A stretch of DNA of 64,000 bases, taken from contig JAKMXF010000299.1 in assembly GCA_024704765.1 (NCBI GenBank), positions 1 to 64,000 of the forward strand, given 5' to 3'. The notes under the pieces were generated by a model that searched no databases, had not been told where the DNA came from, and saw only the letters and a list, made by a program, of their open reading frames with translations. A program made the position numbers and the translations under genes. Of this stretch, positions 17,845 to 39,500 are shown one piece after another. Within the stretch, counting starts at the first letter, position 1, and each line of letters starts with the position of its first letter. This stretch comes from Oopsacas minuta (Eukaryota > Animalia > Porifera).

Positions 17845-20800
17845 ATGGATACAAACCCTCCCTATGAGGAGTTCGTAACACACTCTGAAGGGTTTGGGGG
17901 TTGCATATTTTTCTCTCTTCTCGGGAGGGACTATCTGCTCTCTTGTGGGTCGGACGGAGATATCAGATTACTGGATCTGTCAGGAGAGAAAGAGCCTATA
18001 GATTTGTATATCGGCTCCTCCCATCTTTACCAATTAGCTTGTGTTTCAGGTGACCTCATTAACACATTATTGATATCTTTAAAATTATTATAATCTTGTT
18101 CTACAGAGCCTACTGCTGGAGTCTTATTCGCTTGTGAAGACAACTCGTTATACTGGATAAATTTGAACCTCAATGACTTCTCAAAGCATACAAGGAAGAT
18201 AATCACCAGGTATCTGCGTGTATAAGAGTTGTAGCCTGGCTAATGTGCTGACTCTATGTATTCTGATAGGTTTGCCTCTGCTGTATACTGTGTGACTACA
18301 GATTCTAGTGGCCGTTGGATAGCAGCAGGAGCTGCAGACTTTACAATTAAGCTTATCCCAGCATCTGCCATTCTAACAACAAATCAATACACTTGTCATG
18401 TTCTAGACACTCATTCAGCTCCCGTACTATCTCTATCATTCAGTAGTGATGGTCTTATCCTATGCTCTACAAGTTGTGACGGACACCTCATCGTTTGGTG
18501 TACTAACAGTAGAACTGTTAAACACAAGATATCTGTTCTCAGCCCTAAAGTTTCTGATTTGTCTCTCTCCTCCTCTCGACTAGTTGCTGCCCTATCATGT
18601 ATGACAGCTGACATATGTTTCATGGCCACACCCCAGAGCTTCAGTGAAGAAGAGTGTCCCTCTGTCCCAGTATACTCCTCACTCGATTATCATCTTATTG
18701 ACAGGTACATATTTTAATATTATCTTATTATATGTTTAATTTTGTGATTGTATCAGACTAGTTTCCAACTCTACTACTGACTCCAGATCTTCTGGAACAT
18801 TCCATTGCTGCGCTTGGTCTCCAGACAGTCTCTATCTAGCTGCTGGCACTGCTTTGGGTCATATTATTATCTGGAGCTGCTCTGTAGATGATACTCGTGT
18901 TATTTTCAAAAGAGTTTCCATATTACGTCACACTTTAAGAGGAGATATAATTTCTGTTGCTTGGGGGGTGTCCAATATAACTGGCAAGTTAATGTTAGCT
19001 GCTTTCACAAAGTCTGGCTACTTAATACTATATGAGTCTCTTGAACTTACTCCTTGTACTATTCAGGCTAATGCGAATCAGTTGGATGACAGTTTGTTGG
19101 ATGGTCTCCAAGCAGCTGATCTGTTTGATTCCCAAGAATCTCACTCTAATATTCAAGTAAACGGGAGTAATATAAACATGGAAGAAAGCAGTCTTGATTC
19201 TAAACCACGTAAGTTGTAATATAAACTCTATTTGTTATTATATAATTGATTATGTTCTTATACTACATAAATATCTCAGAGACATCTCCCACAAAGACTG
19301 ACAGAAAAGCTGCCAAAAAGCGCAAGTTCGTGCCAGAATGGGAAGAAGATATAGCTATTATTGAGCCAGAGTACTCACAATCTTGTTCTGAACCTGTTAT
19401 CCAGCCAGAGCCCTCCTTATTACGTCAGGAATCTTTTCAGCCCAGTTCTTGGCCTCCTTTCTCTCAGATTACTGGATCTGAGCACGTATGTCTCTGCTAT
19501 AACTTAGTAGGAGTTGTAATCAGTCACAAAGCTCCAGGCGCGTTTGAAGCTGAGAGTGAAAATAAGCATTTTAACTTTTTGATAGAGGTAAGCTGACTTT
19601 ATACCAGTTATTGCTTATAACTATTTCACAGTAGCTGATCTATTAGGTAGAGTTTCACGACCGAGGGGTACATCACCCTCTCCAGCTTATTGATCCGCAT
19701 TGGTTCTCTGTTGGTGTTCTTACCGATGAGTTGTTGGTGCTGGGAGGCAGTGGTAATAGAAATGTTAAGAAACAGCCGAAGGATCAGTGCTTGATACAAG
19801 TACATAGATTCAATGCTTGGGATGGTTCCAAAGAATGGAACGCTCAGCTGCCAGAAGGAGAGAATGCTCTCTGCCTTGCAGCAGGCAGAGACTGGATTGC
19901 TGTAGTTTCTGATTCTCTAATTTTGCGTCTGTTTGGCACTGAAGGGACACAGTTCGATCTCCTCAAGATGCCCGGTTATCCGGTGTCAACTGCAGGCAGA
20001 GGAAGTCGACTAATTTTAGTTTATCATCAGAACTGCACTCTCAAAGACAGTCAAAACATGAGTTATTATCTCTTAGCAGTTTCTGGAATGAAACTAGTTC
20101 TGCTCGCTGAAGGAACACTGGTGATATCTCTGAATTCTGAGTTAAGATGGATTGGATTTACTTCTGCAGAATCTCCAGTAATCCTGGACTCATTGGGACA
20201 TTTAGAGGTACTCCATATTTATATATTTACTAATATCTATACTGATATTATGTGTTAGGTTGGTAGAGTTAATTCAAGAGGTGTTATATGGGCACCTATG
20301 CTAGACTTCAGCAAAACTGTACGTAAAAAGAGGAATACTCACAAGCTTGTAATTCTGGGTATCACTCCCTGTCTGGTAGAACCAACTGAAGATGAGGAAT
20401 CAGTCTGTAACGAAGAGATCAGATACATTGTACCCTCTCATGGCTCTCACTACCCTTCTCTATATCCTCGTCCCTCTGTACAGGTTGTCACTTATAATCC
20501 TCCATTCTGTTCCGTGGCTACTTCCGGAGTACTCTCTCTCGAGCAGCGGTACTTCCTCTCCACGTTCTGCTACGGCCAAGTAGCCAAACAATCTCAGGAG
20601 GAACTCATGCGACTATTCGCACTAGCTGCTCGCTCCGGGTCCTTCCAGAGAGCTCTGGAGGTAGGAGCTTTGTTGAATCAGCAATACAAACAGTTGGCTA
20701 TCACTTATTCGTCTAGACTACAGCTGTCCATGCTTGGTCAGAAAATGAACTCTCTTCTAGATGCTGGGAGAGTAGAAATAACAGATACAGCTGTAACAAT

Positions 20801-21326
20801 CGATTCAGAAGATCCATCTTTTGCTATATCTCAAGCAGAACACGAGTTGAAAGACTCCCCTCTTGTTCCTGGAGAAGAGATAGCTCCCTTCCTCTCTGCT
20901 ATCAGGACTAATTCTACAAACAGAGATAGTAACTTATTCTCTTCTGCTCCTGCTAACCCCTTCAAGAATCAGAAAGCTCCATTCTCTAGAGCTTCCAGTA
21001 TAGACAATAGCTTCATTAAATCAGTAATACAGAAATCTCTGGGAGGTAAACATACATTAAGTAATGTAACTGATAACAAGCAGCAGACCTCTGATCTCTT
21101 CTCAAAGCAATCTAAGCTAGGAGAGACAAGACATCCGGTTAAACAAACTGAAGCGAACAAGTCTTTTAATTCTGTTGAAAGCTCCAAACCCAAACCAAAT
21201 ACTTTCAAAGACTGGTTGGAACAAACAATGCCTCAATTAGAAGCTGACAACCCAACGCTAAAGAAAACAGAACTTATTCAAATTGCAACTAAGAAATGGC
21301 GTGAGGAAAAACGCGAAATTTCCTAA
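17845..21326 (+). CDS. WDHD1: WD repeat and HMG-box DNA-binding protein 1 (AND-1/Ctf4), multi-exon
   Basis: N-terminal WD40 ('LSCGSDGDIRL'); SepB-region motifs 'FQPSS', 'CYNLVGV', 'VEFHD', 'FNAWDGSKEW..QLP.GE'; C-terminal HMG-like 'NTFKDWL......L..DNP......L.......W'. Several short GT-AG introns; exact exon set not fully resolved. Confidence 0.9.
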
Positions 21327-21722
21327 CTTCTCATCCCGGTCACTTTACAAGTTTATATATCGCTTCTATCTATTTTATTGAATTAGATGTGTGGTAATTT
21401 TCTAGTCGCTTAGTCTCTGAGCAGAACTTGAAGCCATGAGGTACAGTAGCTATTGTGTTATAACCACTCTCTGTAACAATAGCTGATAGTGTTCATTACT
21501 TTCAGCACATGGAGTAAAGAGATTAGCATTAGATAGATTACATCGCTACTACATCTAAAATTATATATTGGCTATTTAGCAATTTGTGTGATTGTATTTG
21601 CGTTTTAAATTGTAAGTGAAATTTTGCTTGTTTGCTTACTATTCTGATGCTCTAAAGTGGCTAACAAACAAACTGTACTCCTATTTATACGCAGATATTC
21701 CTAAGTATATTTAATCAGTCAA

Positions 21723-24578
21723 ATGCTCTCACAAGAGAATTTGCTTTGCTTAGCTCCTTTCTCCTCGATGACTCACAAGTATAACAACGCCCTCCAGCCT
21801 AACCATCAGCAGCAACTCCAATCGCCTGCAATTGTTCCACAAACACTCACTGAGTCTCCTAAGTTACCCAGACCACCTCCAAAGCCCAAACCGCATCGAT
21901 TTGTCCTAAAATCCACCGATCCTGTTCCATCTGAACTTACACCCACTCCACTCAAGTCATACCCTCATAGGAATTCGTTTCTTGATTCTAAGGAATCAGC
22001 TTTTGGATTTGAAACCCAGATTTACACAGAAAATAAGTTTTCTAAGCCTCAAGTAAAAAATATACGCGACTTTTCAAAACATGTAGATTATCATTTAGAA
22101 GTTAGGAGTACAAAGCCTGAGCTAAATACCTGTAGTTCTCTCTCTCTTTCAATTCCTAGCCCCACGCAAGACCCTCAGTTAAACACAGCAAATCTTCCTA
22201 TCCAGGAGCTAAATGCTAGTCCTTACTCTGTTAAGAAGAAATTTAAGATTGGAAAACACAAGAGACGTTACACTCCTAATAACAGCCCTATTCTCGGTAA
22301 GGAGTCAAACGCAGAGCCCTCTCTTACTAGCTTCAATAGATCTCAAGAGGATGCACCAAATAACTTGGTTCAATCTCAGTCTATTCCCAGTATTAAGGGA
22401 AATAAGAAAGATAAAAGTATAGCTCCTGCTCCTGTATTGAAATCAATTCATTCTGTGCCCATCGATGATCTTGGTCCCCAAATTGTATCCCGTCCCTCTC
22501 TTCTCAAATCTTACTCAGATATGCCAGGAGATAGCCCTGACGGTATACCAACTGGTATGCACACCTCTCCTTCATTTGACAGCTCTGATCCCTCAGTAGC
22601 AGACATCGGATCCCTCAAACTCGTAACAAGGCTGTTCTCTCAGTTTGAATCAGTATATGATCAATCCCCCAGAAGACCTGACAATCCATCTCTGCCCCGT
22701 TTGGACTCTTTCTTACAAGATTTCATTTTGGTAGACAAACAATCAGATAATCCAAACGCCCCCAGCTCTGCTACCGAATTAGATCATCTGAAGAAGAAAC
22801 TTAAGAAAGTATACTCCACTGATGACATCACGAATGTAGGAGATGACTTCACTACCTCCAGTGCTACATCTGTATTCATAGATCCATCTAGATCTATCCC
22901 TTCTACTCCCAGTGTAGTAATGCCTAAGAGGAGAGCATGGGATCAAGTCAATAGCGCATTCTCACTGATAAAACTACGAGGCTCTGTCTCACACACAAAA
23001 CGGTCTGATCCATCTTATACCCCTTCCATTTCTGGATCCGAGGAGGATGACGACCAGGGAGGGAAGATATTACTGAGATCTAAGAGACCCGCTCATGAAA
23101 TATTCCGTGAATCTATAAGAGTTAAGAAACGAGAAAGGTTAATGATTGCTTCTATGAGTAATGACAAGACAAACACATCTCCCAGTAGTTCTGCTACCAC
23201 GCTAGAGAGTGAGAGATCTGAACAGAAAATGTTTGAGTATGTTATCGTGGTTGGTCTTTCTAAGAGTAAGACAGAGGACAAATACGAACCTACCATATCC
23301 TACAGATTCCCTCCCATGAACGACATGGGAGCCGGATCCTTCCTCTCGTCTGTTCCTCAGTTCTGTTTCCCTGATGCTAGTCTATGGAAACCAGCTGTGT
23401 TCAAACCTTCTCACAATCATCTCTCTGAGACGTACTCATTCGTACTCACAGACGAGTTAGGAGTTAAAAAGTTTGGTTACTGTAGACGTATCCTACCGAA
23501 AGGGAAAGACCTGCCAGAGGTGTATTGTATTATTTCACCACTAGGTTGCTTCTCTCTCTACTCTTCTATTCTAGACTACGTGGAAACAGAGAGGGCACGT
23601 TCTTCAGCACTTGTATATGCGTTCTTAAGAGCTGTCATTTCCAGGCCTCTGCCATTGCCAGGACAGTCAGTCTCTATAAAATCTATAGTCTCAGATTCTA
23701 GACAGGGCGTTGGAGGTCTGTCCCTATTCAGACCTCAAGAATCATCTCGCTTAGAACACGTTAACTTCTCTAAACTGATGTGTTGTCTGGGTATTAAACT
23801 TACTTTACAGTTATTTGCTGCTACGTTACTTGAGCGTAGAATTATATTTGTAGCAGAACAACTGAGTCTTCTATCTAGTTGCTGTCATGCAATAGTAGCA
23901 CTACTCTATCCTTTCTCATGGCAGCATGTGTTTGTACCAATCCTCCCTGAAGCTATGGTTCATATTTGCTGTAGCCCCTCCCCCTATATCGTAGGGCTAC
24001 TCCCTTCCTCTCTAGAAACTGTCTTGCAGTTTGGAGAGGAAATGGAAGAAGCCATAATCATCTCTCTCGATGATAGGAAATTTATTCGTAAAGCAGGAGA
24101 TGAAGATCAAATACTTCCCTCTAAGTTACAGACTGCATTACTATCCTTACTAACAGGCTGTGATAAGCCAAACACATGGAGGGAGGATCTGGAGATGAGT
24201 GACGTAGTTATTGAGGCATTTATAAGATTCTTTATTGAAATTCTTGACATTTACAAAGATTTTACTTATCCGAACTTGGATGATCCCAGCATTATAGAGT
24301 TTCAAACAAAACCTTTCCTCAAAACTATAAAGAGTAAGGCTTCTAGAAGATTTATGTCAGAGTTTTGTAAGACTCAAATGTTTTTCAATTTCCTACAAGA
24401 ACAAGGAGATAATCCAGAATTTTCCCAGTCCATAAAAACTATGTTTCAAGAAAGGTATGACGAGATAATGTCTAATCGCGTTCTCTCTGCGAAATATGGC
24501 AAACATGTTTCCTCCGGCCTGCTTAAAAAGTTTCGCTTTGGAAAGATCGCCAGCTCTGCACCTGGGAAATCGAAATAG
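21723..24578 (+). CDS. DENND2: DENN domain-containing protein 2-like Rab GEF (ST5/DENND2 family), single exon
   Basis: Low-complexity N terminus, then 'MFEYVIVVGL', 'VPQFCFPD', 'ETYSFVLTDE.G.KKFGYCRR', 'LLERRIIF', 'ALLYPFSWQHVFVPILP', 'F.KTQMF..F'. Confidence 0.9.
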   Translation: MLSQENLLCLAPFSSMTHKYNNALQPNHQQQLQSPAIVPQTLTESPKLPRPPPKPKPHRFVLKSTDPVPSELTPTPLKSYPHRNSFLDSKESAFGFETQIYTENKFSKPQVKNIRDFSKHVDYHLEVRSTKPELNTCSSLSLSIPSPTQDPQLNTANLPIQELNASPYSVKKKFKIGKHKRRYTPNNSPILGKESNAEPSLTSFNRSQEDAPNNLVQSQSIPSIKGNKKDKSIAPAPVLKSIHSVPIDDLGPQIVSRPSLLKSYSDMPGDSPDGIPTGMHTSPSFDSSDPSVADIGSLKLVTRLFSQFESVYDQSPRRPDNPSLPRLDSFLQDFILVDKQSDNPNAPSSATELDHLKKKLKKVYSTDDITNVGDDFTTSSATSVFIDPSRSIPSTPSVVMPKRRAWDQVNSAFSLIKLRGSVSHTKRSDPSYTPSISGSEEDDDQGGKILLRSKRPAHEIFRESIRVKKRERLMIASMSNDKTNTSPSSSATTLESERSEQKMFEYVIVVGLSKSKTEDKYEPTISYRFPPMNDMGAGSFLSSVPQFCFPDASLWKPAVFKPSHNHLSETYSFVLTDELGVKKFGYCRRILPKGKDLPEVYCIISPLGCFSLYSSILDYVETERARSSALVYAFLRAVISRPLPLPGQSVSIKSIVSDSRQGVGGLSLFRPQESSRLEHVNFSKLMCCLGIKLTLQLFAATLLERRIIFVAEQLSLLSSCCHAIVALLYPFSWQHVFVPILPEAMVHICCSPSPYIVGLLPSSLETVLQFGEEMEEAIIISLDDRKFIRKAGDEDQILPSKLQTALLSLLTGCDKPNTWREDLEMSDVVIEAFIRFFIEILDIYKDFTYPNLDDPSIIEFQTKPFLKTIKSKASRRFMSEFCKTQMFFNFLQEQGDNPEFSQSIKTMFQERYDEIMSNRVLSAKYGKHVSSGLLKKFRFGKIASSAPGKSK

Positions 24579-24900
24579 CAACACATGCTGTTATAAGTCC
24601 GCTGTACATTTCGCTTGTTCATATTTTAAGAATTGTGATGTGTAGATAATATACTTTTTATTCTTATACCAATCAGTCATACAGAGCTCTGTCACAAGAG
24701 TTGTTTAATTACTATCTTGTATGTTTATTCTTTTTATCAATCTACATATTCTTAGATTTTCAAATCAACAAAATCTATACAATTAAATACTTTGAATATT
24801 TCCTAACTTTCGATATATTTATGTAACGCTCCTACTCTTTTCTTAATCGTTACTTGTAGTTCTACTCAACACATTTTGATGCTAGAGATAGTATATAAAG

Positions 24901-27144
24901 ATGAATGGCCACTCTTCTAATCCATCTCCTGATTATAACACTAGGGATGATCCTCACCCCACAAGGCACCTCAGTGATAAAGCTCCTCCAAGCGAGCACT
25001 ATCGACAGAAACAAGAATATTTGCCTGTGTATAAGCCTAATGAGTCTCCTAATGGATTATCTGCTAATCAGCAGGGAGAAGGAGGTGTACAGCCTTTCAA
25101 TTTTAATGAATATAAAGTGTATTATCACTCCATATATTTGGGAAGAAAGCAATTGAAAGAAGCTCGTAGAGATTATTCAGATAATCCCACTTCCTCTTTC
25201 AGACTTTCAGTACACACACAGGAACAGTTTATAGTCATGGTATGTATGCATAGACATTTATTATTAATTACTAATTGTAATAGTATTATTCACTGTTTGT
25301 AGTTATTTGTTAAACTGCTTCAGATGCGTCGCAGTCTCTTACGTGAGAAACACAACCTTTCACAAGAAGACTTAAAATTCTGTATGGGGAATCCAACAGT
25401 CGAACACTGGCTAAAGGCAGTAGTCATTCAATCTCGAAGACTGATAGAATGCATCAAGTCCCAATTTGATTCTATAGAGAGTCTTCTGGACAGTAACAAA
25501 GATTACCTCCTGGAGCTGCTTGCACCTCACCCAATACACGAGATAGAGAGAGAACTATTCCTCTCTTCCTGGAGTATTCTCCAATCCTTTTCCTCTTCCG
25601 AGTTTCATGATTCTCTTTCTAATTACCACTTCTCATGGACTGAGTGCTGTGATAGAATGCTCTCACAAGAAATACCCTCAAGACTATACCTTAGTGATCC
25701 TATTAGTGAAAGCACAGTAAGTGACCCTCGCATACGCGCGCCGTCTCCCGACCCATGGACGCCCCCCCGCTCTCCGGATCGTGTTATTGGACCCAATAAT
25801 CACACTTTTCCACGCCCTCACAAGCCCTCTCTTAACCCAGACTCTGTAGGGACGGACCCTCAGAAGTTAGATGGACATGATACCATTCCTGGGGACGGGA
25901 CTCCTACTCCCAGGACATTCATAGGCATAAGGTTCTTGAGGCGGATCTTTCGTCCTAGAAACATATCCATACGATCATATGTACATCAGCAATGCAGAGG
26001 GTCTATGAACTCTCTGATAATGGAGTACGAGCAAGAACCCAGAGCTCCCAGATACAAAAATCACATACAAGCTTCTCCTGACAATGACTTTGGCTCTCAA
26101 TTACGTTTGCAAACTCAGATTCAAGACGAAGTATTTGATGATGATGCCATTCACTCTCCCTCCTGTCCCTCTGACACCGCCCAGACAGACGGATCCTCTT
26201 CTCCCCGTGTCTCCTCCTCTCCACAGCCCACCGACTGGGAGATCAACTTCGAAGAGATCCGTAACATTAAAGAGATCAAGAGTTGTAAGTTCAGCTCCTT
26301 AGCTACTGGCAATTGGCACGGACAGGTTATGATCAAAACCTATAAAGGATCTCTTTGCTTTGTGAGAGATCAATTCCAGCAAGAACTGAATGCTTTAAGG
26401 AATATACGTCATGATAACGTTATATTATTTCGTGGAGCATGTACTACTAGTGATCCAAACCTTACCATTGTTACCAGTGTAAAACACTCCCCTACACTAC
26501 ATCATGTTATCCGAATATCTCCCAAACATCCGCTGGAAAGAGTACTGACAATTCTTAAGGAAATATCACAGGCGATGACGTATTTACACGATAGGAAAAT
26601 TGTTCATCAAAACCTCACTACAGACTCAATCTACCTGGAGCGAGGAAATGCTAAGCCAATTCTATTCGATATTGCGGTTAACCCTCTACTGGATAATGCC
26701 GGAATAGATCCCGGTTCCTGGGAATTCCCACGGGGTTACGTGTCATGTATGGCTCCTGAGATCATTGACTCTCTATCTCCCTCAACTCATGAGTTAGACA
26801 GATACCTGCCATTCTCCGACAAGAGTGATGTATTTGCTTTTGGCTCTATTTGGTACGAGTTATACACTGGTCAGTATCCTCTGCAAGGAGACCCGATAGA
26901 AGTTGTTTTATTCAAAGTTAGCAACGGGTACAGACAGACTCTTGATCTTATCATAGGATCCCGAAGTATCAAAGAAGAGCTGTGTCGTTGTTGGAACAAG
27001 GACCCACTCAAACGACCATCTTTCCAGAGTTTGGGAATAATCATAGACAAACTACCAAACCTCCAACAACCGAGGAAAATGCCTGCTCGTAGCAGCTCCC
27101 AATCAGCAGTCATGCCTCTCAAGAGCTCAGAGGCAACTATGTGA
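24901..27144 (+). CDS. KSR: Kinase suppressor of Ras-like pseudokinase, 2 exons (24901-25239, 25324-27144)
   Basis: CC-SAM-like N terminus ('PTVEHWL.AV'), 'DWEINFEEI', 'GNWHGQV.IK', 'HDNVILFRGAC', 'MAPEII......LPFS.KSDVFAFG.IWYEL' match the KSR/RAF branch; 84-bp phase-0 GT-AG intron. Confidence 0.82.
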
Positions 27145-28082
27145 CGTCATCAGCCAGCTTGGCCGCATTACGATACCGTTATATTAAGCTCAGTTCAGCG
27201 CATCACACATTGCAATCGACGCCTCCGTGCTAAGCTAATGCCTGTAGCCACACGGATAACTTGTGTTTCCCTTTCGGCTGTAATTTTATTTCTTGATGGT
27301 TTTTATTACACATACGATAAAGTATATCTATTTCCGTACATACGTATTAACGATAATTATCTCAAGTTAATATAATGGTACCAGGCTTTCTACTGTGTAT
27401 TATCTATTCTATGATTTTCTTTACATTTCTAAGTCTCGAATAAATGCAGTACAGATTGTCTATTCATGTTTTGTTCATTCATAATATTTACAAACATACT
27501 CGCTTACTAACTTTGTTGTTTAATTACATTTTCAGAATTGAATTTATAACATATACTTGTAAACAATCGCGTAATTTCTACTATTTGCCAACTAACTGGT
27601 GGAGATGTAGCAACCTACGCTGTTACCACACTATACAATACATACATACTTCCTAGTAGGAACAGTCAGCCACTATATAAGAGCCACTCGTGATTGAAAT
27701 TATACCGAATTGCTATTCTGTTATATTTCGTAATTATCAACTCAATCTCTGAAGAACCTCAACGGATATAAGGTAATATCACCTCGTTAATGAATTCTAT
27801 TATAAAGTATTACATTCAGAATTGCGAAATATAATAAAACGCGGTTTTTAGTTGCGCCAATTAGATTAGGGACATCTGTCTTGTACAATATTTGTAACGA
27901 ATCGATCGTGAGCTTTAAATATCGAAATTTGCGCTTTATTTCCGAATTAGGTAGAATATATTCATTTCTTAATATTTTTTGGGATCTAATTATTTCCTGT
28001 TTAGGTTCGTTATTTGAGTTATTTCAATTGTGTCAATTTATCCTAATATCAATAAATGTATATAAATTATTTATTCACACAG

Positions 28083-29978
28083 ATGACTGCAACTTATCTC
28101 ACCCCTCACTCTGCTTTCCAATCCTCACTACCCCACTCCCGTCCCTTAGAAGACTCGCAAGGTAAATCATTAGATATAGCCTTAGAGATGTCTATGTTGA
28201 GCATAACCCCGGGCTATCCAGCTACAGTAACACCAACTGCTGGGGGAGAGAACTCTCCTCTGAACTCATTTTTCTTTGACATGTATGCTCACTCTCACCG
28301 ACCTTCTGACTCTAACGTTAACGCTACTGACTGTGTACAAGTGCCAAGCTCTGAGCACGTGGCAGAGATCGTAGGCAGGCAAGGTCAGTTAACGTAACAA
28401 CTTACATTATGTATATGAATTTTTAATAAAAGAATAATTATACACCACATCGTTAAATAATTCTACTAAAACACTCTTTCGTAGCCAAAACTTCTGTCCT
28501 GACTGTACATACCGATAGCGCAACCCACTCAGTCTATACGTGATCAATAATCTAATAAATTATACATAACTGAGCATAAATTAGCGACCGCTAATGTGGT
28601 TAGTTATCTAAATTTAAATAATATATTACCCCAGAGAATATCTTATAATTATTTACTCTACCTACCACCAACTCATTTCTACCATTGCATTGCATTGCAT
28701 TGCATTGCATTAACATTTTGATATGATCGTATAATGAATTAATTAAATCTATTTTTAGGCTGTAAAATCAAAGCTCTAAGAGCTCGGACTAATACGTACA
28801 TTAAGACACCCGTACGAGGAGAGAAACCAGTCTTTGTGGTGACAGGCAGGAAGGAAGACGTGAATCTAGCCAAGAGAGAGATCCTCGCTGCAGCTGACCA
28901 CTTCACTCAGATAAGAGCTCAAAGGAAGCAGGCTGCTACTGGTAATGCTCTCATTCGTGTAGGTTCTGGTACCCACTCTGTTACTGGAACAGGTCCCTAC
29001 TCACCGACTGATGAGGACAGTCTTACCATATCTGTTAAAGTTCCATACCATGTAGTGGGATTGGTCGTGGGACCTAAGGGAGCTACTATAAAGCGTATTC
29101 AGCAGAAGACAAGCACTTACATTATAACTCCTTCTAGAGACAAGGAGCCCTTCTTTCAAGTTACCGGTGCTAAAGAGAACGTAGAACAAGCTCGTAAGGA
29201 GATAGAGCATTACATAGCAGCACGTACTGGTACAATAGTATCTTCTGATGAGGTAGAGCTGTGTGAGCAACAATCTTTGTCCTATCTGTCTGATTCTGTT
29301 TCTTTTGGTAAGTCTCATCTCGTATCAGATCTGTATCTTAAGCCAGGGGTGCCTGATGATGACCTATTCCGTGGAACTAACGTCCTTAATCCCATGTGCA
29401 ACTTTCTGACGTCATCATCTGCTCCTGTCTCTCATAAATGTTCTACAATCTGGCCCCAGTCCAATTCTATTCCTACTAGTCTATTTGATCCTCAACAGCC
29501 TATGGCCAGTACTTACCACACCTTGACTGCATCTTATCCGGGTCTGCTCACCTCTCCATCCAGCACTATGTCTCCTCCTCTAACTAAAGCATCTAGTGCG
29601 CCTCTCCTATCAGGCGAGAACACAATCCTCCCTCTCGGCTCCTTCCACACAGTAACTAGTACTTCAGAAGCTTCACAACATCCCACTCATCTCTCTCCTA
29701 TCCCTCCCATCGGTAGTAAGAATCGGTGTCCCTCTCTTTACTCAGATTCTGGAGATTCTTCCTCCTTGCTTAGCTCTTCCTGCTCCGAATCGTTTCTTAC
29801 TCCAGACAGAAACGAATTAGACTCGTGCACTGCATGTAGTGCTTCCCCGTCTGCACTTAGAGTAGCCCTAGCTCCCTGTGGTCACATAACTAATTGTGAG
29901 AACTGTGCTTCCAAACTCTACTGTGTAGCCTGTCAGAGAGTAGCCGAGTCAGCTCTCCGGCTCCGTCCTGAAGCTTAG
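28083..29978 (+). CDS. MEX3: MEX3 RNA-binding E3 ligase (2 KH plus RING), 2 exons (28083-28383, 28759-29978)
   Basis: '[17 protein letters not shown]|[32 protein letters not shown]', '[22 protein letters not shown]', C-terminal RING 'C..C...APCGH...C..CA....C..C'. Confidence 0.96.
28683..28711. repeat. (CATTG)n microsatellite, ~6 units, in the MEX3 intron
   Basis: Seen directly. Confidence 0.9.
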
Positions 29979-30914
29979 TTACAACCTATCACCTGCGTTC
30001 AACTTGATCTAAAAATCCTTCAATTTATGAATATAGTAAACATAGACTCTATGAAGCAGAATGCGTGTACAGAACTGAAATAACTATCTTTCTTGTAAAC
30101 TGATTTTTCTAAATGTATATCTAATGTTTATCTATATTATTCTTAATATTATTATTGTTATTGTGTTAGCATTTATTTATTGTATTTCACTATTCGCTCT
30201 CAGAGCAACTTCTATATCCATTCATTACTCATGTTCTCAAGTATTTCCGCAAACGTTCATATAACTGTCATTATTATTATTCTACAAATCTGTAATATGT
30301 AACATCGGACAGAAATATATTATATTCTACAGCATGCCTTTTATATTATTTAATGAAACATGTAATAATTTACTTCCGCCAAGGAACTGTTAGAGGTGTT
30401 AGAAAACGTATAATACCCTCCCAAACTTCTCTCTCAGTTTAGCTAGGTTGCCTTGCTAGTAATCGCTAGGATCGTTATCCGAATCTCTTGTTAGTATTTA
30501 TGGTGATAATATCTCCATAATTTGTGTCTAGTATTACTCAATATATATTTAGAATTCAATTATACTCTGACCTTGTGTGCACATGCATGTGGTATCTTAT
30601 CGACTATTTTCTGCATAATAGCAGCTGCATTGCTTGCTTCTAATGAATATGACTTGGGTCATTCTATTTGGATATATTTATGTATATACTTACTTGCTGT
30701 ACTACTCTTAACTCAATCATTCGGTATTTTGGCTGAAACTAAAATATTCTTTGTAATAGTGGTAAGGGACTTATCTACCCATTATAGTTACATAATTAGC
30801 TCCTAAGCGCTAAGGAATCGTGGTGCGATCTTAATAATTGTTACAAACAGATATGGAAAATAACAGAATATATAGAAATATGTGCTGGTTAAGTTAAATA
30901 TAACTGTAAATATT

Positions 30915-32723
30915 TCAATATCTAATTAAACGATCCAATGACTCTTCTTTCTTTCTTTTCCTCCCTATGCCCTCAGGATCTACCATCCTAAGTTCAGGTT
31001 CATAATAGAACTCTATTGGATTACTGTATAGACTGTCTGAAAGCCTTCTGAGACGAATAAAGACTGTATGGGTCCGCTTAATGTTAATATCTGTATAAGA
31101 AGGTGTCTTAATAGAAACTGCATACTGATGGTGTACATCATTAGAAGTTATAGCTATATTCTGATACCATCCTATTTCATTATCTACACTATCTCTCTCT
31201 TCAGAGAATATAACCTCTATGTCATTCTTTTGAATCTTCTCGCATAGGATTAGTATCTCATCGCTTCCCTCTGGATTTCCCTTGCTTACATTAATTTTAC
31301 AAATGCGAGGAGAGCTTGAGTGTACTGACTGTGAGTCGAATATTGAGTGAGTAGTGAGACGGCTCAGCTCTGTGAATTCACCTCTAACTTTATGTTGTGT
31401 GTATATTATGAGTGATAGTTTGACAGCTGACAGGTTCTGTGGTGATGACGTATTCCTCTCTTGTCCTAAACTAATTTCTTTATAGTCCTCCTCTGTCAGA
31501 TGTTTTTTGATTAGTTCTTCCAAAGCTGACTCGCTTCCTGTTCCGTTAAGATTGCTACTAGCAAGGGCAGAGCGTAATGCATCTACTCCTATCTTCTCCA
31601 CAAGTCTCCTTGTTTCTAACTGCATTTCAGCACTCTGTGTAATCAATTTCTTCTTGCAGTGTTGTATGGAAATATTACCTAACAACATCTTAGGACTGGA
31701 TGACGAAACAACTCCATATCTGACCATAACTCCCCGATGCACATCTCTCCCTACCAGACTATTAGCGTGCTGACATCTCCCCTCATCTCCCACTAGATAT
31801 CCTACTACTATTACTCTGCCCTCGTAATCATTGAACAGGAGAGTGGGGTGTGTCTTTCTACCTCTCTCTGAGTACTCTCCAGGTATTCCTCCGTGTGTGT
31901 AGCCCTCACATTCATAGCGGAATCTGTATCCCTGAGATTTAGGTTGTTCTGAGATTATAACTGTCGGATGATTATCCCCATTTTCTGTTATTATCTCTAC
32001 CCGTTTAATTCCATTAACAACCTTAGGATAGTATTGCTCTAGAGCATAAGAAAAATCCTCTATAACAGTATCAGCCTTGAGATATCCTATATTAAGCATG
32101 TACCATAGTAGAGTCCTGTACTCTTTGAATATGTAGTTATCTGGTACTAGCTCTGCTTTATCACTACTCTTATTAGCGTGGGGTATTAATCGGTGTAAAC
32201 TGTGTAACTCTAAGGGATCAGCAATACGTAGCAGATGTTTTGCTTGATCTTCTTCTAACTTCCAATCTACTCTACTCTGCGAGTTTAGTTTAGAACTCGG
32301 CTCTAACTTAAGATAAGATCCTAATGCTGCAGTGCTGGAATGTATTGGTAAATAGAACTTTCTGAAATAACTGGCCCAATTCGGGAGTGTATAAGAAGAT
32401 GAGTTGTGTGTGTAAAGGTTCACTATCTTGTTACTTAGTATATTTTGTTGTAACCAAACTAGTGTACTGTTACTACCATTCATTTCTGTTGTAGAGAATG
32501 TATCAATAGATAGAGGGGTCCATACCAGTAGCAAGAACATGTCTCCTAGTCCTCTGATCTCTTCCTTATCGAAATATGCTACTTGTGTAACCTCTAGCTC
32601 TCTACAGAGCAGTTCTTTCTGTACCCACTCTAAATACTCCTCTATTTGTGTTTCTGAATCGGGTCTACTGGTGTGTGGAGACATCACCAATGCTATTACA
32701 TGTGTTTTTATTTTTACACTCAT
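30915..32723 (-). CDS. NFKB: NF-kB (p50/p52-type Rel homology domain) with a ~250-aa N-terminal extension and no ankyrin repeats
   Basis: 'EQPKSQGYRFRYECEGYTHGGIPG' (HGG is p50/p52-type), p50-like helical insert, 'ILCEKIQKNDIEV.F', 'DVHHQYAV..KTP.Y', 'RRLSD', NLS 'RKRKK', stop about 10 codons later. Confidence 0.93.
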   Translation of the reverse strand: MSVKIKTHVIALVMSPHTSRPDSETQIEEYLEWVQKELLCRELEVTQVAYFDKEEIRGLGDMFLLLVWTPLSIDTFSTTEMNGSNSTLVWLQQNILSNKIVNLYTHNSSSYTLPNWASYFRKFYLPIHSSTAALGSYLKLEPSSKLNSQSRVDWKLEEDQAKHLLRIADPLELHSLHRLIPHANKSSDKAELVPDNYIFKEYRTLLWYMLNIGYLKADTVIEDFSYALEQYYPKVVNGIKRVEIITENGDNHPTVIISEQPKSQGYRFRYECEGYTHGGIPGEYSERGRKTHPTLLFNDYEGRVIVVGYLVGDEGRCQHANSLVGRDVHRGVMVRYGVVSSSSPKMLLGNISIQHCKKKLITQSAEMQLETRRLVEKIGVDALRSALASSNLNGTGSESALEELIKKHLTEEDYKEISLGQERNTSSPQNLSAVKLSLIIYTQHKVRGEFTELSRLTTHSIFDSQSVHSSSPRICKINVSKGNPEGSDEILILCEKIQKNDIEVIFSEERDSVDNEIGWYQNIAITSNDVHHQYAVSIKTPSYTDINIKRTHTVFIRLRRLSDSLYSNPIEFYYEPELRMVDPEGIGRKRKKEESLDRLIRY

Positions 32724-32828
32724 TATGTAAATTATTATTATTTACTTTGCTATTATTGTTGTCCTTTATTTATACAAATATTATTGTAAACAAGTTACCT
32801 TCATACGAAGGGACAGATTGCAAAGCAA

Positions 32829-33199
32829 GGGATTTCTTTTTACGAACCATCCTTAATATTTCGAGAAATTTACTATACGCAATGTCCTAACTAATGACTT
32901 TTCCCCCATAAATTATTCTGTGTCTGCTAGCATAATAAATATAATCAATAGCAGGGATATTATTTAGGGAATTTCAATTTATTATCCTCTTTACATTGCT
33001 TACTTCATTTTAATTATATTATTGTTTACTGATAAGTTGTTTATTCAGGGTATATTCCTCTATATATTAGACAATTTATCCGAGTGTAAATAATGAAACG
33101 AATATACTTAGCTAATTGCTATTCTGTCCCCAGTATAAAATAATTAATTTATCCTCTTCAAATTATGCTTGTCTTCCTATCATATTACAGGAATTTCCC
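32829..33199. promoter_or_regulatory. Cluster of kB-like sites upstream of the NF-kB gene
   Basis: GGAATTTCCC at 33190-33199 (= GGGAAATTCC, exact GGGRNWYYCC match); near matches GGGAATTTCA 32967-32976, GGGTATATTCC 33048-33058, GGGATTTCTT 32829-32838. Function inferred. Confidence 0.45.
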
Positions 33200-33312
33200 T
33201 CATTGTTCCTACTCCGAATATTTAATTATTAGAAACAAATTATAACTACATAGTGCTGAATAGTGTATAGGTTTTATAATCCTCCTACATTAGCTTATAG
33301 ATTATCAGTATA

Positions 33313-33494
33313 CAGTGAAACCTTGTTAATACGAACACATCTAATACGAATTCCCGGTTAAAAGACGAACAGAATTTTACACAATTTGAGTCCGTACAAT
33401 GGTTATTCAATTGTTTTACTCCTGTTAATACGTACTCTGGATAAGGAGTACAAATCTCGTTGTCCCTTGATTACGTATTAACGAGGTTCTACTG
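33313..33494. mobile_element. 182-bp MITE of the Tc1/mariner superfamily (pogo/Tigger-like TIRs)
   Basis: TIRs CAGTGAAACCTTGTTAATACG ... CGTATTAACGAGGTTCTACTG, TA on both flanks (33311-12, 33495-96), internal TAATACG repeats, no coding capacity. Confidence 0.85.
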
Positions 33495-33508
33495 TAGATA
33501 TATTCCTA

Positions 33509-36500
33509 ATGTCAGGACACTTGTTTATTCCTCAAATCAATCCATCTAACTCTCCTGCTTCTAACGACCGTCAGCCTAGACGGAGACATACTAACCCTTC
33601 TATCCCGACTCATATACTGTCACACATTGACTCCCCTGAGACATTTGAATCTCTCCTTTCTCCCAGGTACACATAACTACATTATTATTATTATTATTAT
33701 TAATATTTATGTTACATTCCTGTTACTACTACTATATTTGTTTTAGACCTCACGAAAAGGCAAGTACTCCTAACTCTGCTGGAGGTACAGCTCCACTACT
33801 CAAAAGCACGAGTAGCTTAGAGTTCCATAACTTCTCCTCTCCTTTCCCTCCCTCCTCGGAGGTCAGTAGAATAACCGTTATTTCTGATGAATCCTCTCAC
33901 ATGAGTGCAGACTCTACAAGGCTAGAACAGCCTCCTGCTACAGCTGCTGAGATCCTAGATACGATAGAGAAGAGACTGTGTATCATGGCGGGAGGTATTG
34001 ACAAGAAGGGAAGGCTAATTCTTTGCATACCTGCTCAAGCTAAGGTTGTTATTCTCTCATAATATACGTACGTATATAGGTAATAACATTACCTGTATAG
34101 GAATTCTGTTATGATGCAGATGAGCTGAGGAGACTGATCCTTTATCTAGCAGACACACCCCCTCTTGAACTTAAGGCACTGGGGTTCATTGCCGTAGTTG
34201 ACGCCAGACACAGTCCATGGACCTCTAGCAAGCTCATCCTACATACTCTCAAAGATGCTCTCTCCTCCCACCTCCTTAAGGTATATCTCTTACAACCAGA
34301 TCAGTTCTGGAAGAAGAAACAGGCTTCTATAGGTAAGCAGCAGTGTATTACTAGCTGTATCGAAGATTTATGGTATTTATAACAGGTCATAGTAAGGAGA
34401 AAACTAAGCTCCCTTTTGAGACAATTCTTCTCTCCTCCCTCGAGAAGCTAGCCCGATATTTAGACTTGAAGCAATTGCCTGCTGAGATGGGAGGGACTCT
34501 CCCTTACGACCACTCAGAGTGGATCAAGCTCCGGCTACAGCTAGAGCATCTGATAGCTTCTCATAGCTTTATTATGGACCACTTTACTAGACTGGAGCGT
34601 CAGATTACGCATGAAGACAATCCTAGGTAGTAATAAGACTGGTTATTAGTATGTTACAATATTTAATAATTGATTCTATAGAGATATTCAGTCAGGAGAG
34701 ACTGTTCTAGAGAGACAGAGACAGCTGACTGAACAAATACACAAATCTCCTCAAGGGTTCTTACGAGAGGCTGATGACTTCTTGGAGAGAACAGAACAAT
34801 CTCAAAAGATTAGAAGTCCTACTCGCCCCCAATTCATGGTTAGCTATAACTAATATATTATTTGACAATAACTGTGGTTTATGTTTTTGTCTATTATAGC
34901 TATCTCCAGCAGTGCAAGTACCTTACAAACAGTATGCAGCTGTAATAGTCAGGAAGCTTATAGACTCTATGCAGAGAAGACAATTTCAGTTGTCAGTTAT
35001 AGCTGAGGATAAGACTGTCAGACTAGAGCACTGTATCAAGGTAACAGCTGGTATTAGCCTATAAGTTTATATGTTACGTCATGTACATAGGTTCACATAT
35101 TTGAGAATACTAGTGTAAAGCTAAAATCCTGGCTGATTGCTCACGGAGAGGAGAACCTGTCTGGTCCCTCTCACATAGGAGAGTCCTCGGAAGAGAGTTC
35201 TGAGATGATTGAAATTTTGAAAAGGTTCAAAGAGAAAGTTGTTACTATTTCCGGTGAAGTGAGGCATCTTTCGCGAGTAGCTCAGTTGATTCTCTCTTCA
35301 GATCCAACTGCTCCTTCTGACCATGCTAGCTCTCTTACAAAGCTTGTTGGTAACCGTATGGGTCTACTACATCAGCTGATGAGTCAGCTAGCTAATCGGT
35401 ATTATTAGTATATTGAATAATATTTATCTTATTTACCTGTTTATTTATTTGTTTACAGTATTCAGTCACGAGAAAAGATTCTTAATCTAGGAATTAGTTT
35501 CAATCAGCTGTGTGAAGAGCTTAAGGAAGTGATTAAGCATAAACACACCTTAGGGAATAGCTCTGAGAGAATAGTAGAGTTATCTAACCAAATTCTTCAG
35601 GTTTATATAGCAGTATTATACTTGTACATGTAGTTATGTATTTGTTATTAGGGAGGTCAGAGTCTTCTACAGGAGTTCAGACCAGAGAATTTCGCTTATT
35701 CACAACAACTACAAGGGGATTACCCGCGTACCAGTCTCCCTCCTCTCCACTATTCACCTGCTATTGAGTATACAACCAGACAACTAGAATGGAGTCATGA
35801 ACAGCTGTCTAGAGCTAATTCTAACGCTAGGAGGAGGCCTCCTGATGCTGATGGATACAGACTACAACAAGAAGAGATTACTCAAGTGAGTTAGCTGTCT
35901 TTCATATATTTCTACTTATTATTCCTGATATATGTAGGCTATTGAATGGGTAGAGAATGTGTATCATACTATGTTAGATGGTAAGATGCGAGTCTGGGGT
36001 AGTTCAGATGAGTTAGAGCAGTTACTAACAGATTTTGATAATCTTAAAGCTAACATAAATTCAACAGTAAAATACTGTCAGAACCTAATTACCCGCTGTA
36101 TCTCTTATGAGACTAATCAGCCTTCTCAGCTGATCGCTCCTCATGCACCTACTCTCCATTTCCGATTACGCTACCTAACTCAAATGAACACAACTCTAGA
36201 CAGAGCTATGCTAGAGTACGGAGATAGACTCCGTCTAGCATTAGACCTCCAGTTAGCTAGAATTAATGTAAGCAATAATCTGAATAACTATAAACTACTC
36301 ATAGCTGCTGGTAGTGTAGAAGCAGCTAAACAAAAAGAACTGGTAACTAACGACCTAGCTTGTACTACTGGTACAGCTACGTTCTTACAGCAACAGCTCT
36401 CCTTGCCTCTGGTATCTGTTCCTCCCTCTATTCTACCTCACACAGAGTACAGACTAATGCCGGAAACTGATCGTGCTATAGTGTCACTATTAACCGATCT

Positions 36501-39500
36501 GTCTAACATGCAGTCTCAATTAGAGGCTATATGTACTGATTCTAATAGAACTTTTACAGGAGAAGGGAAGGAAGATATGCTTAGAGATATTAGAGATAGA
36601 AGGAGTTGGATATCTGATATAGGATTACCTGGTATCTTGTCTCTGAGTAGGTGGGGACAGGAGCAAGAAAAGGATAATGAATCTCTTGCTAGATTCCTTC
36701 AATTTGAAAAAGAACACTTCTCTATAGAGACTTCAGTGTTAAAGCTCCTCAAGAATTCTCAATTAATAGATGAAGCTAAAATACTGAAGGAAGAATGGTC
36801 AGCGTACTCCCAGCAGTTCTCTATTGTAAAATCTCTATCCTCCAATGCTAGTACTTTTTACAGAGCAATGGAGCATGCTTATAGCACAGCAACCTCTCCA
36901 GTGGACATATCAGATACAGAGCCTAATAAACAGCTGAGAACTTATTTAAATCTACGATCTATTCTTCTCTCTTGTAAATCTGAGTGCCAGAGTTCATTAG
37001 ATAAACTTATGACTCTTACAGATGAGTTAATACTACTCATTGGTAAGACATTTGGAGTAACATTCAAGCATACAAGTATGCTACTGTCTTGTGAGAAAAT
37101 AGAGGACAGGTTAAATACGTTTGAGTTAGAATGGAGATTAGTTCTGAAGGAAATAGGTATGGAACCATTTGATACGTTAATTCGTAATTGTAACGATGTT
37201 CTTACCGCTTTTGAGAGTTATACAGACGAATTTGGAGGAACGTTAAGAGTTGGAAATAGCAAAGAAGATGTCAAACAGCTGACTTTTGAACTATCTGGCT
37301 GTGTTAAGAACCAAGAAAAACTTGCAGAAGACAAATTATCTGTAGAAGAGATGGCTAACGAACTTCTTAAAATGCACAAACTGTTACAATCTCATGAAAA
37401 ATCGCGAGTTGAGTTGCTTTTAAGTGATATATGTAGAGCTAAGGAAGAACTGAATATACTGATTACTGGTAGAGAGAGTTTTATTAAAGAATGTTCTCTC
37501 TTCCATTCCAGATACTCCGCTCTTGTTAGAGAGATTGAGAGATTAGAACAGACATTATTCAAACCTCAGTCATTAACTGTCAATCAATCAAAAGATTCTT
37601 CTTCAAAAATCCAACAAATCAGTGCTTCTTGCCAGAAAGAAGTTAACCAATTCTTGAAATTCACAGATAGTATCCATGATTTTCCATCTACTGAAACTCT
37701 ACACATTAAGAATATGCAACACAGAATAGAGTCTAGATTGTCAGAATGTCAGAAGCAGTTGAGAGAGAAAGGGGCTTATTCTAAACAGGAGAAGGAGTTG
37801 GAGGAGTTAACTCAAAAAGCAAGAGCTCTATACAACTGGTATCTCGACCATATGGGAGCTTATCTACAGAACATCAGCTCTCTGCCTTGTACTAAACATG
37901 CTCTCAATGAATATTCTTTGGAAATGACGACATTTCAACAACAGATACTATTATCAAAAGAATCAGAACACGAGACGTTACAGAACAGAGCTGCTCTATT
38001 CATTCGCTCTCTAACGGCTGAATCAGACAGATATAAGCTTGAACATGTGTCAGAAGAATTGAAAAACATTCATAAGAAACGAACTTCACATTTTAACGAT
38101 CTTCAACACTTAGCTCACCTATCTACAGATATTCTATCTTGTTGCGAAGAAGTGTCTATTCTAATTTCTGATATTGATGAGTTTTGTCAAACAGCTGATT
38201 CATCATCAATAGATGTATTTCAAGAATATCAAGCTCGTTTTGAGCTTTCTCAGAGCTGTATTACCAAACTATCATCTCTCTTCGAGCAGTTCTCCTCACA
38301 TCCAGCTGCTTCACTCTCCCCACACGAGTCAGCTGATATTCAATGCATGAAAGCTCTTGATACATTTCGTAGAGAAGTGCTGAAATTAAAGGTACACTTT
38401 AATCAGGTAGAACATGCATTTCTATCTTGTGAGCGTAGCTTCCAAACTCTACCCTCTCTTGACAACTCTTCACATAGAGAACTCGAGTTACTACGTGACG
38501 TCATATCACAAGTTGACGGAGATCTAGCTCGTATTAGTCGTGTATTTCCTCTGACACTAGCAGACACACAACAAGCTCTAAACAGTGTCACCAGCTCTCA
38601 ATCAGCACTCTCTAGCATTAATCGTGTTACTTTAGAGAAGAGCTATTCTACTTCTAAACTCAATACTCTTGCAAGCTCTCTTCTTGTTAAGTATAATACT
38701 GCTTCTGATTTCTCTCTACAGCTGTCTAATATACTCAACAATCTTCTATCCTTCTTATCTGCTACAGAGAGTTGTAGAGCTATGCTACAGAACCTGCTAA
38801 CACAAGTTAACGCTAACAAAGCTCTGCCCTCTCCTCTCCGTATTGAAAGGGTAGAGAAGAGCATTTCTAGACAGTTGACTGATAAATCTGATATAACTGA
38901 GAGTGTTAAAGAAATCCTAACTGATAAACAGCTCTCTCAAATACTGTCTAAGTTAAACAGTTCTACTGCTACAGTACAGCAACTATTCACTCAACTGAAA
39001 AGTGCTATCCGCCTCAAGACTGAATCAAACGGAGAAAAGTTATCACTAGATCAAGTGGACAGATTTGAGTTAGAAGCTTTTCAAATGATTGATTCTATCA
39101 AACTCAAGATGGATGACATTCCTGATATGGATTTGGTTGTGCAGAAAGGTTTATTAATCAATTCAGTCCGCGAGCAGCTTGACGGATTAACTCTAGAAGA
39201 AGACTTTATTAAAATGTTAATTAAATCAGTCAATCATCTGCTAATGACTGGTAACTCTATAATATCTACAGGACATCCTAAATGGCTCCGTGTAGAGAGA
39301 CTCAGTGAGCAGGTATCTGCTACTCTCAAAGAGTTCAAAGATATCGTAACCAGCAATAAACAGAGACTTAACTTGCTGATGGAACTCAGCTCTTCTCTTA
39401 CTGATATGAGAGAATGGTGTAATACTGTCAGTCAATTGACAGCTACTCCTCTACCTGTAGAACATAGCAGAGAGCTTATACCCCTCTACCACAAGACAGA

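Follow-up and report, generated by a model that had tools for sequence, protein, structure and literature searches.

The window, the 64,000-nucleotide stretch of Oopsacas minuta contig JAKMXF010000299.1 analysed here, contains on its reverse strand a complete single-exon open reading frame (ORF) at 30915–32723, which encodes an NF-kB orthologue of 602 amino acids followed by a stop codon. The Pfam profile RHD_DNA_bind recognised a Rel homology DNA-binding domain with a p50-type insert (aa 256–463; 31335–31958, reverse strand; E = 2.4e-26, 93.2 bits; cut-off 27), and RHD_dimer recognised the dimerisation (IPT/TIG) domain of the Rel homology domain (RHD) (aa 473–577; 30993–31307, reverse strand; E = 5e-27, 94.4 bits; cut-off 28.3); both domains were also matched by PDB sequences. 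In aa 1–250 there was no credible Pfam match.

The top relative among PDB sequences was mouse/human p105/p50 (E = 7e-45), aligned as a single stretch over aa 253–592 that includes the p50-type helical insert. p65 (5e-38) and c-Rel (8e-33) ranked below p50, each with its alignment broken in two, and RelB was also lower, its alignment split in the same way. The RFRYxCEG recognition loop, the His that follows the loop, the RRxS site and the RKRKK nuclear signal were all in alignment with p50; RFRYECEGYTHGG and RKRKK match the p50 residues and are invariant in eight orthologues. Judged by its sequence, the protein belongs to the NF-kB subfamily (p50/p52 type) and is closer to it than to p65, c-Rel or RelB.

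The protein ends 10 residues past its nuclear localisation signal (RKRKK, aa 588–592), and the signal and the tail EESLDxLIR together occupy 30918–30962 of the reverse strand. It has neither a glycine-rich region nor ankyrin repeats, the two features that characterise the C-terminal half of the NF-kB precursor type (p100/p105/Relish), and the 7 kb downstream contain no ankyrin-like or Gly-rich ORF on the same strand. The first-pass annotation had described a single ORF without the ankyrin half, and this description held, with an intact p50-type RHD and a conserved stop codon. The tail itself (aa 593–602; 30918–30947) is kept in eight species and is absent from the divergent orthologue P0010; it is a possible export or masking signal.

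Transcript, neighbouring genes and orthologues

A contig of 2447 nt from run X4 (record 19) covers 30782–33205 of the reverse strand in an unspliced, RNA-like form. It contains, without gaps, 133 nt past the stop codon, the entire ORF and, 5' of the ATG, at least another 482 nt. We infer the RNA nature of X4 from its behaviour, no run being recorded as RNA: the depth falls to zero in the intergenic interval 30373–30766, adjacent genes differ 500-fold in depth, the next gene shows GT..AG joints of 53–56 nt, and an Illumina adapter trace is present at a loose end. Because this one gapless contig spans both parts, the N-terminal extension and the RHD lie on one unspliced RNA, as the first-pass annotation had supposed. 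Its alternative that splicing might add ankyrin exons downstream found no support, since the RNA-like contig stops shortly after the stop codon and the downstream 7 kb are free of ankyrin-like ORFs. The true transcript ends cannot be fixed from contigs.

A convergent gene at 28836–29978 (forward strand) encodes a MEX3-like protein with a KH domain and a C-terminal RING; its depth in X4 is 20,000–37,000, as against 76 for the NF-kB gene. On the other side, a divergent Trio/Kalirin-like gene starts within 33496–34500 (forward strand), with GT..AG introns of 56 nt (34043–34098) and 53 nt (34331–34383) that are confirmed by an X4 contig. Between them, roughly 600 nt before the start of NF-kB, lies a short dispersed repeat (33310–33496), and the X4 NF-kB contig ends just beside it. 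Depth at the repeat climbs into the thousands in each of the four runs, and with its numerous variant contigs and internal deletions it looks MITE-like. Run X5 (organism B) carries the locus at approximately 95–96% DNA identity (48 of 1291 ORF nucleotides differ) and represents a very close sister species or population in public data.

The architecture is kept in eight further species, seven at 60–74% identity and one at 33%. Seven orthologues of 599–615 aa, with 46–65% identity in the extension, were obtained in a search with aa 1–250 in full-length context. The eighth, P0010 (572 aa), was found through an RHD search; its RHD is 41% identical, it aligns from aa 12 to the C-terminus, and its gene lies on a 2.2-kb contig (L002) that holds little else. 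All eight orthologues (572–615 aa) have the same start and end right past the nuclear signal. The ORF was uninterrupted in all five genomic loci fetched (L001, L003–L006), each of which has the Trio/Kalirin-like gene upstream, and in L003 and L004 a convergent KH gene was called in the corresponding downstream place.

In the two species pairs with unsaturated dS, dN/dS was 0.10 and 0.15 for the first predicted domain of the extension, 0.12 and 0.15 for the second, 0.11–0.15 for the extension as a whole, and 0.08 and 0.075 for the RHD. These sequence comparisons indicate that the extension is under purifying selection across nine species, and the conserved two-domain extension is very probably real.

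It could be argued that two neighbouring genes were fused, or an upstream non-coding ORF was added, by chance or misassembly and that the real NF-kB start lies near aa 250. Gene callers do put the start of the window protein at M14 (P0001, 589 aa), and the RNA status of the reads has no formal record. However, nine species share this continuous frame, P0010 on its 2.2-kb contig among them, the window sequence is borne out by three independent DNA runs, one RNA-like contig spans the whole, the extension evolves under the constraint described above, and there is no Met between aa 209 and aa 334. At the other end of the extension, an in-frame stop codon lies 1–30 codons before the first Met, with no further ATG between, in the window and in the six orthologous loci compared (7/7). 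We consider such an artefact to be effectively refuted and extremely improbable.

Predicted folds of the N-terminal extension

The extension is set apart from known families in sequence. A phmmer search with aa 1–250 against 1.84 billion representatives matched only the orthologue cluster and P0009, a 4,736-aa FN3-repeat protein (E = 3e-21). P0009 was rejected because its score is the sum of approximately 47 repeat matches of about 5 bits each across an FN3–FN3 boundary, that is, repetition noise; kinship with it would also be at odds with the predicted fold of the extension, which is alpha/beta and not Ig-like. The case shows how an E-value computed over a whole sequence can mislead when the match is a giant repeat protein. 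A word-index search with the N-terminus of P0010 matched only itself, a scan of metagenome contigs with the extension alignment yielded no relatives, and ESM Atlas feature searches with the whole extension and with both halves gave no usable match. With a profile of the nine sequences, not one PDB chain was matched up to E = 10, and scans of each member against Pfam, PADLOC and NCBIfam (E up to 10) gave nothing consistent for the extension; weak Rbx_binding and ALO matches were below threshold and inconsistent among members, and were discarded. Since no sequence profile recognises the extension, the fold assignments given below are supported at the fold level only. The structure models were built from alignments of only 8–9 sequences, and the quality of prediction is limited by this shallow depth; the two-domain model has a mean pLDDT of 52, with 65–79 over aa 160–235.

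Domain 1 (aa 5–145; 32289–32711, reverse strand) is predicted to form a (beta-alpha)5 flavodoxin-like sandwich that is closest to TIR/SEFIR domains. A model to which P0010 was added has a mean pLDDT of 60, a pTM of 0.55 and the complete (beta-alpha)5 layout, with strands at 7–13, 43–50, 63–68, 100–106 and 123–126 and helices alphaA to alphaE between them, within aa 7–139. At this level of confidence (mean pLDDT 60), the model has the five-stranded parallel sheet, the flanking helices and the approximate size (135–150 residues) of the STIR fold. Structure searches ranked the candidates differently. With Foldseek, the top matches were CheY-like receivers (E = 2e-3), ahead of TIRs (1.4e-2); receivers, together with B12-binding domains, also came out of the Atlas shape search, at TM 0.5–0.6. 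In a second look at the full PDB with aa 5–145, TIR/SEFIR chains were the six best neighbours. The signatures of a receiver are missing when the sequence is set against the strand positions of the model: no acidic pair follows beta1 (..LVMSP) and no phospho-acceptor Asp follows beta3 (..LLVWTP).

TIR, TIR_2 and SEFIR profiles gave no match in searches of Pfam, PDB, PADLOC and NCBIfam with an E-value limit of 10, and neither the BB-loop nor the TIR box 1/2/3 motifs were found in the extension alignment. The first-pass annotation had seen a TIR-like fold in residues ~7–125. This proposal is partly supported: at the fold level the six TIR/SEFIR neighbours agree with it, in models with a pLDDT of 52–60, and at the sequence level no profile or box motif speaks for it. 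These models suggest that the fold class of domain 1 is likely flavodoxin-like (beta-alpha)5; within that class, TIR/SEFIR is the best, not a decisive, assignment, and we give it an even chance.

Domain 2 (aa 157–243; 31995–32255, reverse strand) is predicted to be a death-fold-like helical bundle with death effector domains (DEDs) as the best matches. In an exhaustive structure search, every one of the 18 rows that cover this domain was a death-fold member; DEDs were on top, and five PYDs and two CARDs were among the others. The model is a compact six-helix bundle of the size expected of a death fold (about 80–90 residues), and its nearest structures are death folds. Other results are less favourable. 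With the model that the ESM Atlas itself provides for the helical part, no death-fold neighbour was obtained, Foldseek on the two-domain model and its second look gave nothing informative for this part, DED, Death, CARD and PYD profiles did not match the extension at E up to 10, and P0010, the most divergent orthologue, does not have the segment modelled as the last helix. A DED proper is recognised by its sequence profile and by the RxDL charge-triad motif; on sequence, domain 2 would not qualify, as RxDL is absent from aa 157–250 of the window protein, just as the first-pass annotation had noted. Its further suggestion of a DED-like death fold at residues ~158–240 is upheld in part: the neighbours and the helical pLDDT of 65–79 agree with it at the fold level, and no profile match accompanies them. 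We consider a death fold somewhat probable for domain 2 on the basis of the models.

The likeness of the two domains to TIR/SEFIR and DED could also be due to convergence or to bias in the models, the extension being a lineage-specific regulatory module. Such a module would act within the protein or in the nucleus, in transactivation, co-factor binding or additional oligomerisation, and would not dock on immune adaptors. In favour of this explanation, the extension has no sequence kinship to any family and its helical part finds no death-fold neighbours in the ESM Atlas model; furthermore, an RHD-only protein has no annotated transactivation domain, and the extension could supply one. On the other hand, domain 1 lacks every receiver signature when its sequence is read against the strand positions of the model, six TIR/SEFIR chains came first in the full-PDB second look, and a generic bundle would hardly give death-fold matches in 18 of 18 rows. 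A lineage-specific module of this kind is a sizeable minority possibility.

Linkers and candidate regulatory sites

Two segments of very different conservation connect the domains. The interdomain segment at aa 137–156 (32256–32315, reverse strand), of the YLKLEPSSKLNSQSRVDW type, reads LKLEPSSKLNSQSRVDW in the window protein and is nearly invariant in eight species. Its Ser-rich part (aa 139–154) ranks with the best-conserved parts of the extension, K139 and P142 are retained even in the 33%-identical P0010, and aa 146–156 of the window protein are 100% identical to those of L003, as against 62–66% for the flanking domains. Both models treat the segment as disordered (pLDDT below 50). Because it is highly conserved yet modelled as disordered, we regard it as a candidate linear motif, which may serve as a phosphorylation or docking motif.

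The variable acidic linker between the extension and the RHD (aa 244–252; 31968–31994, reverse strand) is, in contrast, the least conserved stretch, with 11–78% identity between species. It has no conserved Asp, and two species have no Asp there at all. The first-pass annotation had proposed release of the transcription factor by caspase cleavage in the linker at 240–252; because no Asp is conserved, this proposal is unsupported. The conserved Ser-rich interdomain segment is the better candidate for a regulated site.

These segments also bear on whether the extension might be an intramolecular inhibitor in place of the ankyrin half, folding onto the RHD, nuclear signal or tail and keeping the factor inactive until it is lifted by proteolysis or by phosphorylation of the Ser-rich interdomain segment. 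The usual ankyrin-repeat inhibitor is missing, the tail past the nuclear signal and the Ser-rich segment are both conserved, and the activation of Relish and p100/p105 by cleavage or processing provides a precedent (PMC13042239). Against proteolytic control of this type, the 244–252 linker has neither a conserved Asp nor another obvious cleavage site. Our estimate is that intramolecular inhibition is quite unlikely.

Known architectures and a possible docking role

Control of NF-kB by ankyrin/IkB masking is regarded as ancient. In Drosophila, Relish couples NF-kB activation directly to the death-fold/caspase machinery (Dredd, FADD). Relish is cleaved at a defined Asp and has ankyrin repeats, whereas the sponge NF-kB has no ankyrin repeats and no conserved linker Asp.

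The first-pass annotation had taken it as established that known NF-kB precursors carry C-terminal ankyrin repeats and that TIR and death-fold domains sit in separate upstream proteins. This background was overstated, as exceptions of three kinds are already known. First, a 2026 review of holozoan NF-kBs distinguishes four configurations and lists RHD-only NF-kBs in hydrozoans, scyphozoans, some soft corals and the choanoflagellate Acanthoeca spectabilis (PMC13042239). Second, Leger et al. report a C-terminal death domain in p100 and p105, and in no non-metazoan Rel/NF-kB (PMC8763368). Third, BCAP contains a TIR domain and an NF-kB-type TIG domain in one chain, and dimerisation through the Ig domain makes the TIR functional (PMC7128310).

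The sponge protein resembles each of these in part. With the RHD-only NF-kBs it shares an NF-kB-type RHD, a nuclear signal, the absence of ankyrin repeats and an end soon past the RHD; they differ in consisting of the RHD alone or with a glycine-rich region, and none has been reported with a conserved, folded 250-aa N-terminal module. The described sponge NF-kBs (Amphimedon, Sycon and Corticium) all have ankyrin repeats (PMC13042239). Because RHD-only NF-kBs have already been reported (PMC13042239), losing the ankyrin repeats is a type of variation seen before, and it is new for sponges. The p50-type RHD with its insert, the RFRYxCEG loop, RRxS and the nuclear signal are common to p105/p100 and to the Amphimedon and Sycon NF-kBs. 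The death domain of p100 and p105 lies at the C-terminus, past the glycine-rich region and the ankyrin repeats, whereas the death-fold-like domain of the sponge protein is N-terminal and is preceded by the TIR/SEFIR-like domain.

The BCAP/BANK1/Dof proteins (TIR – DBB/TIG – ankyrin; PDB 5FOR) resemble the sponge protein, as far as its predicted fold goes, in having an N-terminal TIR-type domain and a dimerising Ig domain of the NF-kB/NFAT/EBF type in one chain. MyD88 and the SEFIR/TIR–death-fold adaptors likewise combine a STIR-type and a death-fold domain in one cytoplasmic protein that feeds NF-kB, but have no transcription-factor part. In MyD88 the death domain comes before the TIR; the order in the sponge NF-kB is reversed, and the likeness is at the level of predicted folds.

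We found no description of a glass-sponge NF-kB in the literature searched: the 2026 review of holozoan NF-kBs does not mention glass sponges (PMC13042239), and the genome papers on Oopsacas and Aphrocallistes do not mention NF-kB, Toll or MyD88. The same literature contained no description of an RHD joined to a TIR, a SEFIR or an N-terminal death-fold domain, which agrees with the view of the first-pass annotation that no equivalent has been described. The N-terminal module thus appears to be undescribed.

The order of the parts is a TIR/SEFIR-like domain, the conserved linker, a death-fold-like domain, the variable linker, the p50-type RHD, the nuclear signal and the tail, as far as the predicted folds go. 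The two N-terminal domains could be homotypic interaction modules like those of immune and cell-death adaptors. Dimerisation of the RHD would then bring them together in pairs, just as the TIG domain pairs the TIR in BCAP. By way of the extension, NF-kB would be held at, or recruited to, cytoplasmic assemblies of STIR and death-fold proteins; this tethering would take over the control exerted elsewhere by ankyrin repeats or IkB, and a signal would free the factor to enter the nucleus. By analogy with these systems, a docking or tethering role of the extension is conceivable, and we hold it to be doubtful. The locus is best explained as the genuine, expressed NF-kB gene of a glass-sponge lineage; the docking explanation, taken as a whole, falls slightly short of an even chance.

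A stronger version, in which true TIR/SEFIR and death-fold domains on NF-kB allow it to join signalosomes directly, as a one-protein shortcut that replaces the adaptor–kinase–IkB relay, is rather unlikely in our judgement. If it is true, such a shortcut would perhaps suit the syncytial tissue of glass sponges, and it might give a clue to the origin of TIR–TIG adaptors, BCAP among them, from Rel-type proteins. Should the folds be confirmed, the protein would be the first NF-kB-family transcription factor with receptor-proximal interaction domains. A conserved NF-kB without the inhibitor half and with adaptor-like domains adds to the NF-kB architectures known so far, and the locus offers a concrete, cloneable test case for the shuffling of signalling domains and transcription factors in early animals.
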